Source of the DNA: Salpingoeca rosetta
Lineage: Eukaryota > Protista > Choanoflagellata
DNA: 64,000 bases
Direction: 5' to 3'
Assembly (NCBI GenBank): GCA_033442325.1
Contig: JAWQFM010000005.1
Location: 549,327-613,326, forward strand
Shown: one piece after another, positions 3,837 to 9,073 of the stretch
Numbering within the stretch: the first letter of the stretch is position 1
Layout of the letters: each line of letters starts with the position of its first letter
Program-made: the position numbers and the translations under genes
The notes under the pieces: generated by a model
Database searches by the model: none
What the model was told of the DNA's origin: nothing
What the model saw: only the letters and a program-made list of their open reading frames with translations

Positions 3837-6800
3837 ATGTCGGTGTTCGAGGAGCCAACGCAAACGTTCCACCCGAGTGTGACCATCGACGACGATGACG
3901 ATGATGGTGGTGATGATGGTGATGCCGATACGGGTGTTACGGACGACGAAGGAAAACAGCAGCAGCAGCTCAGGGCCTCGGCTGTTGCTGATGAAAAGAA
4001 TGTACCTTCGCAGTGGCAGCACTCGCACCAGCAACGGTTACTGGTGTTGCAGGGCATCACAGGTCAGTGTGCGTGTGCGTGTGCATGTGCGTGTGTGTGT
4101 GTGTGCGTGTGTGTGTGTGCGTGTACGTGTGCGTGTACGTGTGCGTGTGCGTGGGCGTGTGCGTGGGCTTGTATGTATGTATTTATGCACTGTTAGCTTG
4201 TGTTCTCATTGTCACTTGTCATGACAGGCTCTGGGAAAACAACACTGGCCAAACACATCATGGACCTGGCCGAGCCAAACACATGGGAGCGCATCTGCCA
4301 GGACGTACTCGGGTCGCGCGACAAGTGCATCGCCATGGTACGAAACACTGGCGATGGGACATTCAGTTGAGAGAGAACCCCTGTCTCTCAAATCCACACA
4401 ACTCACACACACACACACACACAACTCTCACACACACACACAAAATCACACACACACACACACACAATCACACATGACACACAAGGCTCGGCGAGCATTG
4501 AAGGCAGGCAAGAGTGTCATCATCGATCGCACAAATATGACCAAGCACCAGGTACGCATTGTCATCATTGATCATTTTTCTTGATGCCGTGAAATCGTAC
4601 ATCATCTTTGACTAGCCCTGCTTCTCTCGCACCAACTGTCACAACCGTGCACACACACACACACACCACACACACACACACGTACATGATTGCTCATCAC
4701 TTTTAGCGCAAGCCGTGGATTGATTTGGCAGACAAGTTCCACATCCGACCTGAAGCGGTCGTCATGCAAACAGCATCTCATGACTGCGTCGAGCGAGCAT
4801 CAAAGCGCCGAGCACACGAAGGCGGCATTGACGCAGCCAGCGCGGCCCGCATCATCAACATGTGCGTACCAGCGTTTGCGCTTAATGCACACACACACAC
4901 ACACACACACACACACACACACACACACACACACACACACACACACACACACACGCCCCGTCGCACAAGCAACTCATACTTACGCACACACGCACGCCCA
5001 CTCGCATATCACACGTTGGTTGCAGGCAACTTCGCCAGAAAGACGTTGAACAGCCGTCGCGGTTGGAAGGCTTCTGGAAGTTATATCCGTGCAACAGCAC
5101 CCGCAGCGACGCAGAGAAGGTGCTCAAGTCCACTCCACCCGTCAAAGCAAAGACGCAGGCGACACTGCAGATGCTGTTTGCCAAGGTCGGAGCATCACAG
5201 CAGCAGCCGCACATGCACGGGCAACGAGTGCAGCACCAACACAAGGCACCATCTTCTGCAAAGCGGGCCGCTGCTGCCTATCATGAAGACAATGGCCACG
5301 GTGGTGTCACTGCCTCGCAGCGACAGCAGCCGTCAGCAAAGAAACCAAAGGTGGTGGAGGCAAGTCCCGATTTTCCGAGCCCAACAAAGCGGAGCACCGC
5401 TGGGCGGCGTAGGCGGCGTGCTCGTCCACGGAAGACCGGCGCAGACACTGGGGTGCCTGTTGGGGATGTCATTGACCTTGATCTGGACATTGGCGCAGGG
5501 GCTCGCGCTGGTGGTGCTGATCCCACAGATCTTCGCCAATCTGTCCAACCAGCAGCGCTACGGCAACAGCAACAGCAGCAGCAGCAGCAGCAGCAGCAAC
5601 AACAACACCAACAGCAGCAGCAAGAGCAACATGGTACGACAACGGCAATATCCACACCCACCACGGGCACCACCTCGCGAACGGGCGTGCAGGCGAGTGG
5701 CGAAAGCAACACTGTCGCCACGCCATCACCGGGTTTGCTCATGATGGACATCTCGCAGGACAGCATGGCAACGCCAGCACAGCCGTCGCATCACAATGCA
5801 AGCCACGAGCCAGGTGCGCAGCCATCATCGTCGTCATCAGGGTCATCAGGCTCCGTAACTCGCTCGATGAGCTTCAACTTCGACCGGCAGAGACGCACGC
5901 GTCGGCAGCGGAGGCAGCAGAACAATGGTGTATCCGCCGACGACGACGTGAGGAATGAGCGCGCACCGTGGCGTCAGCGATCGGTGATTCAAGCGACACC
6001 GAGCATCCCCGTGCTGCAGGACAGCTTTGCCGACCACACGCTTGACTTTGACAACAGCAGCCAGGACTTGGGGGCAGGCGATCACAGCAGTGCTGACGTT
6101 GCGCCTGCCACCCGTGTTGAGGGCAGTCGTGCTGGTCCTGAGAACCGGCACCGTCATCAAGACACGACAGCTGGTGGTCACGCTAGCTCGGGTGGGGTGG
6201 ACTTGTTTGATGCGCAACAGACTCAGTTTGTTTATGAGGCCGAGACAGTGGATGCGGGGGCACTGGGGCACAGCAATGACACAGACACGAGTGGAGGCAA
6301 CACAAAGCCGCCCCGCACTGAAAGCGACGATGTGATTGTGCTTGACGACGACGGTGACGTCAATGATGACCAACAACAACAACAACAACAACAACAACAA
6401 CAACAACAACAACAACAACAACAACAACAACAACAACAACAACAACAACAACAACAACAACAGCAGCAGCAACAGCAGCAGCAGCAGCAGCAACACGATG
6501 AAGGCGGTATGGCCCGAGCACCCAGCGAACCATGGTATCGGAAGAGCGGGGGACAGCCTGCGTCCATGTTCTCAAGCCCGCGTCACGCATCGTCCACATC
6601 AACGACAGCCTCGCGTGGCCATGGGGCAATTGGGGCACTTGCCAAGGAGGATTCGGTGTTCTTCCGCGAAACACTTGTGGCTGATGATGTTGTCGATGCG
6701 TCTTCAGGCGACGAGCGTCCTGTCGAGACAAAGGCACGGGATAGTCACAACCACCCTGGCGATCGAGGCCACCAGCAGCGACCATCGACAGATATGGATG

Positions 6801-9073
6801 ACCTTGGATCTGTTCTTGCCCATGCAACACCGGGCAGCACAGACACGTCGGCGTCCCCGCTGACGAGCGTTCCTGAAACCATTCTCGGCCCGATTGACAA
6901 CGACGCGGGCTCCCCGCCACACCCACGCAGTCAACAACAACAACAACAACAACAACAACAACAACAACAACAACAACAACAACAACAACAACAACAACAA
7001 CAACAACAACAACAACAACAACAACAACAACAACAACAACAACAACAACAACAACAACAACATACGGGGACGCGGAGGTCGGCCCGTCTTGGCTCGGTAC
7101 CTCCGCCGCCGCTTCTGCGACAGGACCAGAGGAAGTCAGCTCCAACACAACAACAACAGCAGCAACAACAACAACAGCAGCAGCAACAGCAGCAGCGTGG
7201 TCGGAAGGCGGGTGATCATGGACAACACCAACAGAAGTCGCCACAAGCAACAACAGCGAAGACGGCATCCTCCTCATCCTCGTCATCATCACACGGTGCA
7301 AAGGCTCATACACCAGCTGGCAAATCAACGTCGCCAAAGTCTGTCGGAAGAGATGCCGACCCGATGCACACGCGTGCGGACCAGGCAGGACTTGCTCGTT
7401 CGCCGCACTCCGACAACGCTGTCGAACTGATATTGTGGACGATTCCAGCACCTGGAACGGTGAGCGCTTCCTGGTTGAAATCCGCATGTCGCGAAATCGC
7501 TCTTGTTGTGCGTGAAACTGCGATGTGCGCAGACGCTGGGGGTCGTCCATTGTCTCACGCTTCATCTTTGCATCTTGATGTGCAGCCGTTGCTTGCTCAG
7601 ATGAGCAGTGCGCTGCACAGCAGCAGGGACGTATTTGGGCGCAACGCCGCGCACGATTACGGCTTCATCCACTGCACCGTATGTGCGATGCGTTTAGTGT
7701 TTGGAAAGAGGGGGAGATGGTGTACCCATGCACCTGCGCCTCAACATGAACGCAGATCCATATCACACACGCTCACGCACACACACACACGCACACACAC
7801 ACACACACACACACACACACACACACACACACACACACACACACACACACACACACACACACACACACACACACACACACACACACACACACACACACAC
7901 ACACGTGTCCACAGGCGACTGGGTTCTTCACGTGCGATCGGCGCCAGATTCCTGCACTGACGGCGTGTATCGATGACATCGTTCAGGCAGGCATCGCCTC
8001 TGGTCAGTGCTTGTGAGTGAGAGATGGACTGTCAGGCTCACGCTTGGAGTGCACGTTTGCATTCGTACATCACGTTTGACAACGCTGGCATGCTGCCAAG
8101 AATACACATACGTAATAACGCCTCTCACGCCACTCATACACTACACAACAAACACCAATGTTCACCACACCTACCCACACACCCACACACCCACACACAC
8201 ACACATCGTTCACATGCGCACACTCTCGCGCACGTTTGTGTGTCTCCGCTGGTCAGGGGAGCGCACGACGGCAGACTGCCTGCAGTGGATGTGCAGTGCC
8301 GCATTCATCGGCATCAAAGTGTCGTTCCCCTTTGGCCAGAAGGTAGCACAGGCCTTTAAGGTAACCAACTCCACGTGAAGCGTTGCTTCCCACACGTGAT
8401 GCAGCAGCACGAACATCGGCAAGCTTTGCTTACGGCTGGGACTTGTGTGGTCTGCGTGCTTGCGCCGTGCATTCTCAAGCTGCTGTTGCCGCTGTTTGAG
8501 CTTGCTGCGTGTGTGATTGTGGTTTAACTTGTGACTCTTCCCACCAATGTGCTTGTGTGTGCATGTGTATGTGTGTATGTGTGTGTTGCACTGCCAGGTG
8601 AAAGTTCAGGAGCAGTTCAAATACCACAATCGCCCTGTGAACGTGCGCGTCAAGCGTTCCGATCACATCACCCTCGCCCACAAGTTTCCTTCCCAGCAAA
8701 AGGTGCGTGATGGTATGAGTATGCGTGCTTGTGTGCGATTTCATCGTTGTTTCTACAAACAACGGCAACACTTTGATCACCTCACGCGAGCACGGTAGAG
8801 TGTCAAGTCTTTCTACGCCCTGACGTTACACACACACACACACACACACACACACACACACACATACACACACACACACACATCATTCCTCTGCAGGCGG
8901 CTCTTGAGGCGCACTTAAAGTCGCACGTGACACACGCGCTCCCCGTCACTGTTCCTGTTCGCCTGTGTCTGTTTGAACGCCAGCAGCAACAGCAACAGCA
9001 ACAGCAACAGGGCGGCACGCAACCGTTTCAGATGATCGAGCTCCGATCCTGGCCTCTCCCACCTTCATCCTAG
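3837..9073 (+). CDS. Multi-exon protein: N-terminal polynucleotide-kinase-like P-loop domain (AAA_33 type), long Q-rich disordered linker, C-terminal 2H phosphoesterase domain
   Basis: Spliced Walker A GIT-GSGKT (intron 4063-4227), ICQDVLG, SVIIDRTN, QPSRLEGF; 2H motifs IHCT (7670-7678) and DHITLAH (8661-8681); last exon ends TAG 9071-9073. Confidence 0.8.
6371..6494 (+). repeat. Coding (CAA)n/(CAG)n poly-glutamine tract
   Basis: About 40 consecutive Gln codons in ORF 5063..7960. Confidence 0.95.
6932..7060 (+). repeat. Coding pure (CAA)n poly-glutamine tract
   Basis: About 43 uninterrupted CAA units in frame. Confidence 0.95.
7780..7904 (+). repeat. Long intronic (CA)n microsatellite, representative of dozens of (CA)n/(GT)n tracts in the window
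   Basis: Directly visible; similar tracts at e.g. 4888-4953, 14128-14230, 20802-20879, 35358-35432, 56835-56903. Confidence 0.95.

Follow-up and report, generated by a model that had tools for sequence, protein, structure and literature searches.

Does a single gene of a choanoflagellate join a polynucleotide kinase to a two-histidine (2H) phosphoesterase, and could its product act on the ends of broken RNA? The question is raised by a predicted gene of Salpingoeca rosetta carried by a 64,000-nucleotide stretch of contig JAWQFM010000005.1 (assembly GCA_033442325.1, positions 549,327 to 613,326, forward strand); this whole stretch is called the window here, and positions are those of the window unless another contig is named. 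An initial annotation had described the gene as a polynucleotide-kinase-like domain fused to a 2H phosphoesterase of the UBASH3 type, and had proposed an RNA end-healing enzyme that was independently assembled and lacks a ligase. Our analysis favors, on balance, one nuclear gene encoding a kinase, a disordered linker of about 740 residues and, most likely, a 2H tail. The most likely reading of the sequence is that the product would be a bifunctional enzyme that remodels RNA bearing 5'-OH and 2',3'-cyclic phosphate ends.

The kinase domain and its fusion to the tail

The polynucleotide-kinase-type domain of the initial annotation is supported by its matches to Pfam AAA_33, by the proven RNA 5'-OH kinases that are its nearest solved relatives, and by the retention of the catalytic residues. 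Exons 3 and 4 matched AAA_33 at adjoining profile positions (63-84 and 85-124), which supports the splice junction between them; scored singly, the two exons reached 15.7 and 17.3 bits, against a curated cut-off of 27 bits. When the exons were compared with the Protein Data Bank (PDB) by phmmer, exon 4 retrieved 9D8A (RazKIN, the Rhizopus RNA kinase) with E=0.00058 and exon 2 retrieved 9DRZ (E=0.0074) and 9D8A (E=0.018), and the next-best solved relative of both exons was the kinase module of Clostridium thermocellum Pnkp. In the same search exon 3 gave no match, and whatever the head of exon 5 retrieved were spurious alignments to tetratricopeptide (TPR) repeats; the loop that governs GTP preference was not alignable.

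A Walker A P-loop (G-x-x-G-x-G-K-[ST]) is present as GITGSGKTT across the junction of exons 1 and 2 (4053-4062 and 4228-4244), where it aligns with the P-loops of 9D8A and 9DRZ. The codon at 4302-4304 specifies an Asp that falls opposite the Asp of the NQD string in both Mucorales kinases; its equivalent in MciKIN, Asp36, is essential (PMC11571804). Two Arg residues of the exon 4 lid, R30 and R34 (4794-4796 and 4806-4808), align with Arg99 and Arg103 of RazKIN. The GSGKTT sequence, the Asp and both lid Arg residues all sit opposite residues of RazKIN or MciKIN that bind nucleoside triphosphate (NTP) or acceptor, or that are essential (PMC11571804). For the Mucorales enzymes, GTP-dependent kinase activity on RNA and DNA 5'-OH ends is proven, and they function in yeast tRNA splicing. 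The assignment of the N-terminal domain as a polynucleotide 5'-OH kinase, of the Trl1-kinase or Mucorales stand-alone type, is well supported by these sequence matches, and it is by itself a better annotation than the public entry for the gene, which is an unnamed hypothetical protein.

The gene model was read from the genomic sequence with GT-AG introns, and runs on the plus strand from an ATG at 3837 to a stop codon at 9071-9073. A public S. rosetta gene call, which we located through the contig of a neighboring product (NCBI PTSG_01691), has the identical start, stop and strand, a product of 1185 residues and no recorded Pfam family. The first version of our model had nine exons and 1221 codons, with 5026-7678 unsplit and exon 7 placed at 8257-8342; the revised version (Table 1) has ten exons and 1185 codons, with exon 5 split into 5026-7459 and 7586-7678 and exon 7 extended to 8257-8360. 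Every splice site of the gene is GT-AG, and the phases are in frame throughout. The introns of the first version are 148-255 nucleotides (nt) long, and each contains CA/TG microsatellites. Contig coordinates used here are offset by about 4.2 kb from those of the public record GL832957.1, and a run of N, marking an assembly gap, lies at about 2930-3030, some 800 bases upstream of the start codon.

Direct reading placed every string quoted by the initial annotation where it had been reported: QPSRLEGF at the start of the frame that opens at 5026, ELILWTIP from about 7424, GRNAAHDYGFIHCT at 7637-7678, and DHITLAHKF within the exon 8598-8702. The accompanying statement that 5026-7678 is one exon was right about the open frame, which is stop-free for 884 codons and far beyond chance at roughly 58% GC, but probably wrong about the single exon, since 126 nt of it (7460-7585) look like an intron. 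The donor of this segment reads GTGAGC after ACG, its acceptor is pyrimidine-rich and ends in GTGCAG, and its G+C content at third codon positions (GC3) is 0.45, as against 0.60 and 0.81 in the coding flanks. Ten candidate introns of 126 nt can be drawn in the long exon, among which 7460-7585 has the best donor together with a good pyrimidine tract; no candidate intron of 108 nt inside the exon has comparable splice sites. Loss of the 42 residues encoded by this segment, and a gain of six from use of the exon 7 donor at 8360, convert 1221 codons into 1185, and 5026-7459, 7586-7678 and 8257-8360 were therefore taken as the likely mRNA; both changes were made to match the length of the public product and the splice signals. 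We conclude that 7460-7585 is probably an in-frame intron. It is also the sole intron of the gene without a CA/TG microsatellite, and the 42-residue stretch, if retained, would be amphipathic and would lie inside the first half of the tail.

The fusion itself, as had been claimed, does not depend on splice prediction, because a single exon, 5026-7459, encodes in one frame both the kinase C-terminus (LEGFWKLY) and strand 1 of the putative 2H domain (ELILWTIPAPGT). This arrangement bears directly on the alternative that the gene model is wrong, so that kinase and tail are separate genes or the tail exons are non-coding and the protein ends in the low-complexity region. In favor of such an error, the public product was returned by no protein search, and a 401-codon antisense open frame (6360-7565) does overlap the region; frames of this kind, however, are expected here because CAG/CTG-rich sequence yields them by itself. 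The shared open frame, the public call with the same start and stop and with a length that the revised model reproduces, and the excess of GC3 over GC2 (the second-position value) in the tail exons all argue against this alternative, and we regard it as very improbable.

The linker and the putative 2H tail

Between the two domains lies a linker of about 740 residues that is of low complexity and rich in Gln and Ser (21% Gln), with polyglutamine (polyQ) runs of 14, 41, 43 and 16 residues, the two longest at 6371-6493 and 6932-7060. Its hydrophobic fraction is at most 0.20 per 50-residue block, apart from one block at 0.24, and rises to 0.32-0.36 where the tail starts, at about residue 798-801 of the long frame. 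The linker is predicted to be a disordered, Gln-rich segment with basic clusters. Motif reading alone picks out short strings at 5156-5179, 5468-5488, 6332-6352, 5336-5353 and 5405-5434, which we take to be a degenerate PCNA-interacting-peptide (PIP)-like sequence (Q-x-x-L-x-x-L-F), two acidic-hydrophobic SUMO-interaction-like sequences (VIDLDLD and VIVLDDD) and two basic clusters resembling nuclear localization signals.

These presumed linker signals would suit a DNA-repair enzyme, that is, a nuclear 5'-kinase that processes the ends of DNA breaks as mammalian PNKP does and is recruited through the linker. A role at DNA breaks is conceivable, because related kinases also accept DNA: phosphorylation of DNA 5'-OH ends is reported for both the Mucorales kinases and the lancelet PNK/CPDase, and the structural neighbors of RazKIN include the PNKP kinase. 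The PDB searches with exons 2 and 4, however, retrieved RNA kinases and not PNKP itself, and another locus of the genome (L002) looks more PNKP-like by its motifs. A 2H domain is not known to have a role at DNA ends. Given these observations, we consider DNA repair an improbable function for the gene, and an enzyme acting on RNA ends remains the reading pursued below.

The tail comprises about 200 residues, and its sequence features make it likely, in our judgment, that it adopts a 2H phosphoesterase fold. It contains two motifs of the form H-h-[ST]-h: H-C-T-A, encoded by 7670-7678 and the first codon of exon 6, and H-I-T-L, encoded by 8664-8675 in exon 8; the latter is the second HxT motif (DHITLAHKF) that the initial annotation had placed after the first. 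The spacing of the two His motifs is 83-89 residues and varies with the form of exon 7; both motifs lie within the only hydrophobic block that follows the linker. When the first half of the tail (7400-7678) was folded from the single sequence with AlphaFold2, the model showed a strand-helix-helix-strand order with strands at ELILWT and GFIHCT, helices between them and the His motif in the last strand, at a predicted local distance difference test (pLDDT) score of 45, which marks the fold as a low-confidence one.

We asked how often such a pair of motifs would arise by chance. The pattern h-H-h-[ST]-h occurs at a frequency of 2.6e-4 per residue in the six-frame open stretches of the window, from which the probability of a pair within 235 residues is about 0.002; by extrapolation, chance alone would place two such motifs in some 0.7 stretches of domain size across the 64 kb. 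The figure for the pair is suggestive, and it falls short of significance once the size of the window is counted. This expectation favors an alternative in which the kinase is real and the C-terminal block is some other small alpha/beta domain or a dead, binding-only 2H-like fold, the protein being a kinase with a long disordered tail. The low pLDDT of the first half and the lack of support for a 2H domain from any profile, structure or sequence search (see below) also fit this alternative. Opposed to it are the hydrophobic strand context of both motifs, their spacing, which is usual for 2H proteins, and the strand-helix pattern, which is that of one 2H half. A further point against it is the putative UBASH3 likeness, which extends to several strings beyond the His motifs and becomes better upon removal of the intron, a change made on separate grounds. 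On this evidence a non-2H tail is the less likely outcome, although one that has to be taken seriously.

Several observations weigh against a 2H enzyme that heals RNA ends. A Pfam scan of all exons returned AAA_33 only (exons 3 and 4) and no 2H family, and the PF13563, PF05881 and PF08302 profiles had no match at the locus. PDB phmmer searches with every tail exon gave either nothing or polyQ matches only (those of exon 9 being of low complexity), and no solved 2H chain. The pLDDT of 45 is too poor for a fold search, and the first motif, H-C-T-A, has its fourth residue beyond an intron. An exhaustive phmmer search with a 93-residue query (7400-7678) against 1.84 billion representatives produced two matches, both of them repeat proteins that scored through five to seven stretches, and both were rejected. 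No orthologue was found in the protein searches. At the level of function, a canonical kinase-cyclic phosphodiesterase gene elsewhere in the genome (described below) makes the present gene dispensable for classical healing, and a search of the genome with the T4-Rnl1/Trl1 ligase profile found nothing, the control being likewise silent.

Other searches with the 7400-7678 query gave a similar picture: the ESM Atlas returned no usable match, and the S. rosetta genome returned the query itself only, that is, no paralogue. A metagenome scan produced one match, on a contig with bacterial-looking open frames, which we found unconvincing and rejected. When regions 790-884 and 1-330 of exon 5 were used as queries in a word-indexed protein search, nothing was retrieved, and even the public product was missing. 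The weight of these negative results is limited in three ways. The Pfam and PDB tests were low in power because the exons are short; the phmmer, ESM Atlas, own-genome and metagenome searches were weakened because their query included the 42 probably intronic residues; and since the protein libraries missed the public product, the absence of homologues is weaker evidence than it appears. Neither of the two large libraries returned that 1185-residue product although its length is in range, whereas the neighboring PTSG_01691 was returned. The 2H domain of the initial annotation accordingly keeps its two spaced His motifs and a first-half fold at pLDDT 45, and has gained no profile, structural or sequence match.

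The likeness to UBASH3 is putative. The part of the tail that leads from the helix behind strand 1 up to G-[KR]-N-x-A-H, the first His motif (H-x-T) and the FF-x-C that follows it, a strand with F-I-G, and H-[IV]-T-L-A-x-x-F would be collinear with the phosphodiesterase (PDE) domain of human UBASH3B. The presumed fit becomes nearly gapless only when the 126-nt intron is removed and exon 7 is lengthened, and we count it as a lead only. A literature search for printed UBASH3 motif strings found none. Substrates of the PDE domain of Sts-1 include 2',3'-cyclic NADP and an RNA 5-mer with a terminal cyclic phosphate. Its reported product from the cyclic phosphate is a 3'-nucleotide, and the UBASH3 PDE domain is known only as a predicted model (review, PMC10218301). 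It is doubtful, although conceivable, that the tail is truly related to the PDE domain of the animal UBASH3/Sts proteins and that the gene preserves an older partnership of this domain with an RNA 5'-OH kinase. If so, the fusion would be a testable hint on the original substrate of the UBASH3 PDE, as cyclic-phosphate RNA ends would be the ancestral substrate of a domain whose substrate in immune signaling is unidentified. In lineages with a split Trl1 pathway, such as Mucorales, where the cyclic phosphodiesterase is still missing, this type of 2H domain would then also be a candidate for that enzyme and a fold type to seek.

Table 1. Coordinates and contents of the gene and its parts in the window
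Feature	Position	Strand	Contents and remarks
Whole gene	3837-9073	+	Ten exons in revised model; bounds and 1185-residue length match public call
Exon 1	3837-4062	+	Acidic N-terminus, kinase strand beta-1, first half of P-loop (GITG); ends in phase 1
Exon 2	4228-4337	+	Remainder of P-loop, SGKTT, at 4230-4244; catalytic Asp (gac) at 4302-4304 within CQDVLGSR
Exon 3	4486-4551	+	Kinase strand with VIIDRTN motif; Pfam AAA_33 positions 63-84, E=0.019
Exon 4	4707-4861	+	Kinase lid with Arg at 4794-4796 and 4806-4808; AAA_33 positions 85-124, E=0.006
Exon 5a	5026-7459	+	Kinase C-terminus LEGFWKLY, Q/S-rich linker of about 740 residues, putative first 2H strand ELILWTIPAPGT
Probable in-frame, stop-free intron	7460-7585	+	126 nt; retention would add 42 residues
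Exon 5b	7586-7678	+	Predicted helix and first His motif, H-C-T, at 7670-7678; direct reading; no database match
Exon 6	7915-8002	+	First codon is fourth residue of first His motif; ATGFFTC, then predicted helix; no PDB match
Exon 7	8257-8360	+	Predicted strands around FIGIKV; alternative donor at 8342 gives six residues fewer
Exon 8	8598-8702	+	H-I-T-L, the second His motif, encoded by 8664-8675; nothing matched in PDB or Pfam
Exon 9	8897-9073	+	Predicted helix and last two strands, VRLCLFE and FQMIELRS, parted by short polyQ; stop at 9071-9073

Other RNA-end genes of the genome and the proposed function

The genome contains a second kinase-2H gene, on the minus strand of contig C19 at about 831295-832281 (loci L006 and L024; frame L024:1036-3036). 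Its 667-codon frame matched AAA_33 at 47 bits and tRNA_lig_CPD, the Trl1-type cyclic phosphodiesterase (CPD) family, at 29 bits, which is above the cut-off, and then shows the DxDxT start of a HAD-like domain (FDFDNTL). Genome-wide, the tRNA_lig_CPD profile (PF08302) matched only at this contig, and the CNPase profile (PF05881) matched nowhere. In this genome, Trl1-type healing is probably the task of the C19 gene. We considered whether the gene studied here might itself be the orthologue of the Trl1 kinase-CPD (KIN-CPD) module, and rejected this possibility, as that module sits on C19.

The claim that the present gene was independently assembled and lacks a ligase received partial support from these results. 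In its favor, profiles for the Trl1 kinase, the Trl1 CPD, CNPase and PF13563/LigT-like proteins had no match at the locus, and the canonical pair is encoded separately on C19. When the remaining AAA_33 and 2H loci of the genome, C19 included, were searched by tblastn with the exons one at a time, the result was noise only. The presence of a canonical kinase-CPD gene on C19 would make the present gene a separate kinase-2H fusion, assembled from different lineages, and a less obvious healer in tRNA splicing.

Two further genes of RNA-end metabolism were located. Tpt1 was matched in one unbroken open frame (C26:468781-469311, L011), and RtcB was matched as at least seven separate segments (C16:277529-280944, L012-L018). 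In addition, a separate 2H gene of the PF13563 type, with HIPL and HITV motifs, lies at C18:465510-465986 (L019).

The proposed mechanism can be described as follows. In the kinase, the P-loop, the general-base Asp and the two lid Arg residues would transfer the gamma-phosphate from an NTP to the 5'-OH at the end of an RNA (possibly a DNA), and in the tail the two H-x-T motifs would face each other and hydrolyze a 2',3'-cyclic phosphate. Acting together, the two activities could remodel both of the ends that metal-independent RNA cleavage leaves, a 5'-OH and a 2',3'-cyclic phosphate. The fate of the remodeled ends would depend on the direction in which the 2H domain opens the ring, because this decides which phosphate remains: a 2'-phosphate product could be re-ligated by a Trl1-type ligase and then processed by Tpt1, whereas a 3'-phosphate product would more likely commit the fragments to 5'-to-3' decay. 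In the latter case RtcB, whose substrate is a 5'-OH end, would also be blocked by the 5'-phosphate, and the enzyme would favor decay over repair, in the way that the kinase of the yeast ligase is reported to mark tRNA introns for Xrn1. The Trl1 CPD and CNPase produce the 2'-phosphate that Trl1-type ligases require. The term end-healing needs a caveat, since a 3' end such as that reported for the Sts-1 PDE would not suit a Trl1-type ligase.

Comparison with known systems

Among solved structures, exons 2 and 4 are matched best by the Mucorales kinases MciKIN and RazKIN (9D8A and the related 9DRZ; Ghosh et al. 2024, PMC11571804). Features common to these enzymes and the present gene are a GSGK[ST]T P-loop, an Asp for activation of the 5'-OH and the pair of lid Arg residues, all in the same order and with the same spacing. 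The Mucorales enzymes differ in being stand-alone proteins of 163-208 residues for which no CPD partner has been identified (PMC11571804), whereas the kinase described here is fused to the linker and the tail.

With its tail, the present gene would have a P-loop kinase first and a two-His domain second, an order also found in the Trl1 KIN-CPD module, in the lancelet BfPNK/CPDase and in vertebrate CNPase; the lancelet enzyme and CNPase, like the present gene, have no ligase domain. In all three of these the two domains are adjacent, but here they are about 740 residues apart. The C19 gene of the same genome likewise encodes one protein with an AAA_33 kinase and, behind it, a two-His domain. Unlike the present gene, it has both domains in one 667-codon frame, a tRNA_lig_CPD match and a HAD-like start, and the two genes show no significant similarity at the level of the present exons.

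The putative likeness to UBASH3A and UBASH3B (Sts-2 and Sts-1, or TULA) would consist of strings around and between the His motifs at nearly equal spacing. The partners of the domain differ: the UBASH3 proteins pair their PDE with UBA, SH3 and histidine phosphatase domains, whereas the present gene pairs its tail with a kinase. Fungal and plant tRNA ligases, the PNK/CPDase of the lancelet and the CNPase of vertebrates already show the layout suggested here, but its building blocks differ from theirs, and the gene would be a second, separately built kinase-2H module in a close relative of animals, beside the canonical one in the same genome.

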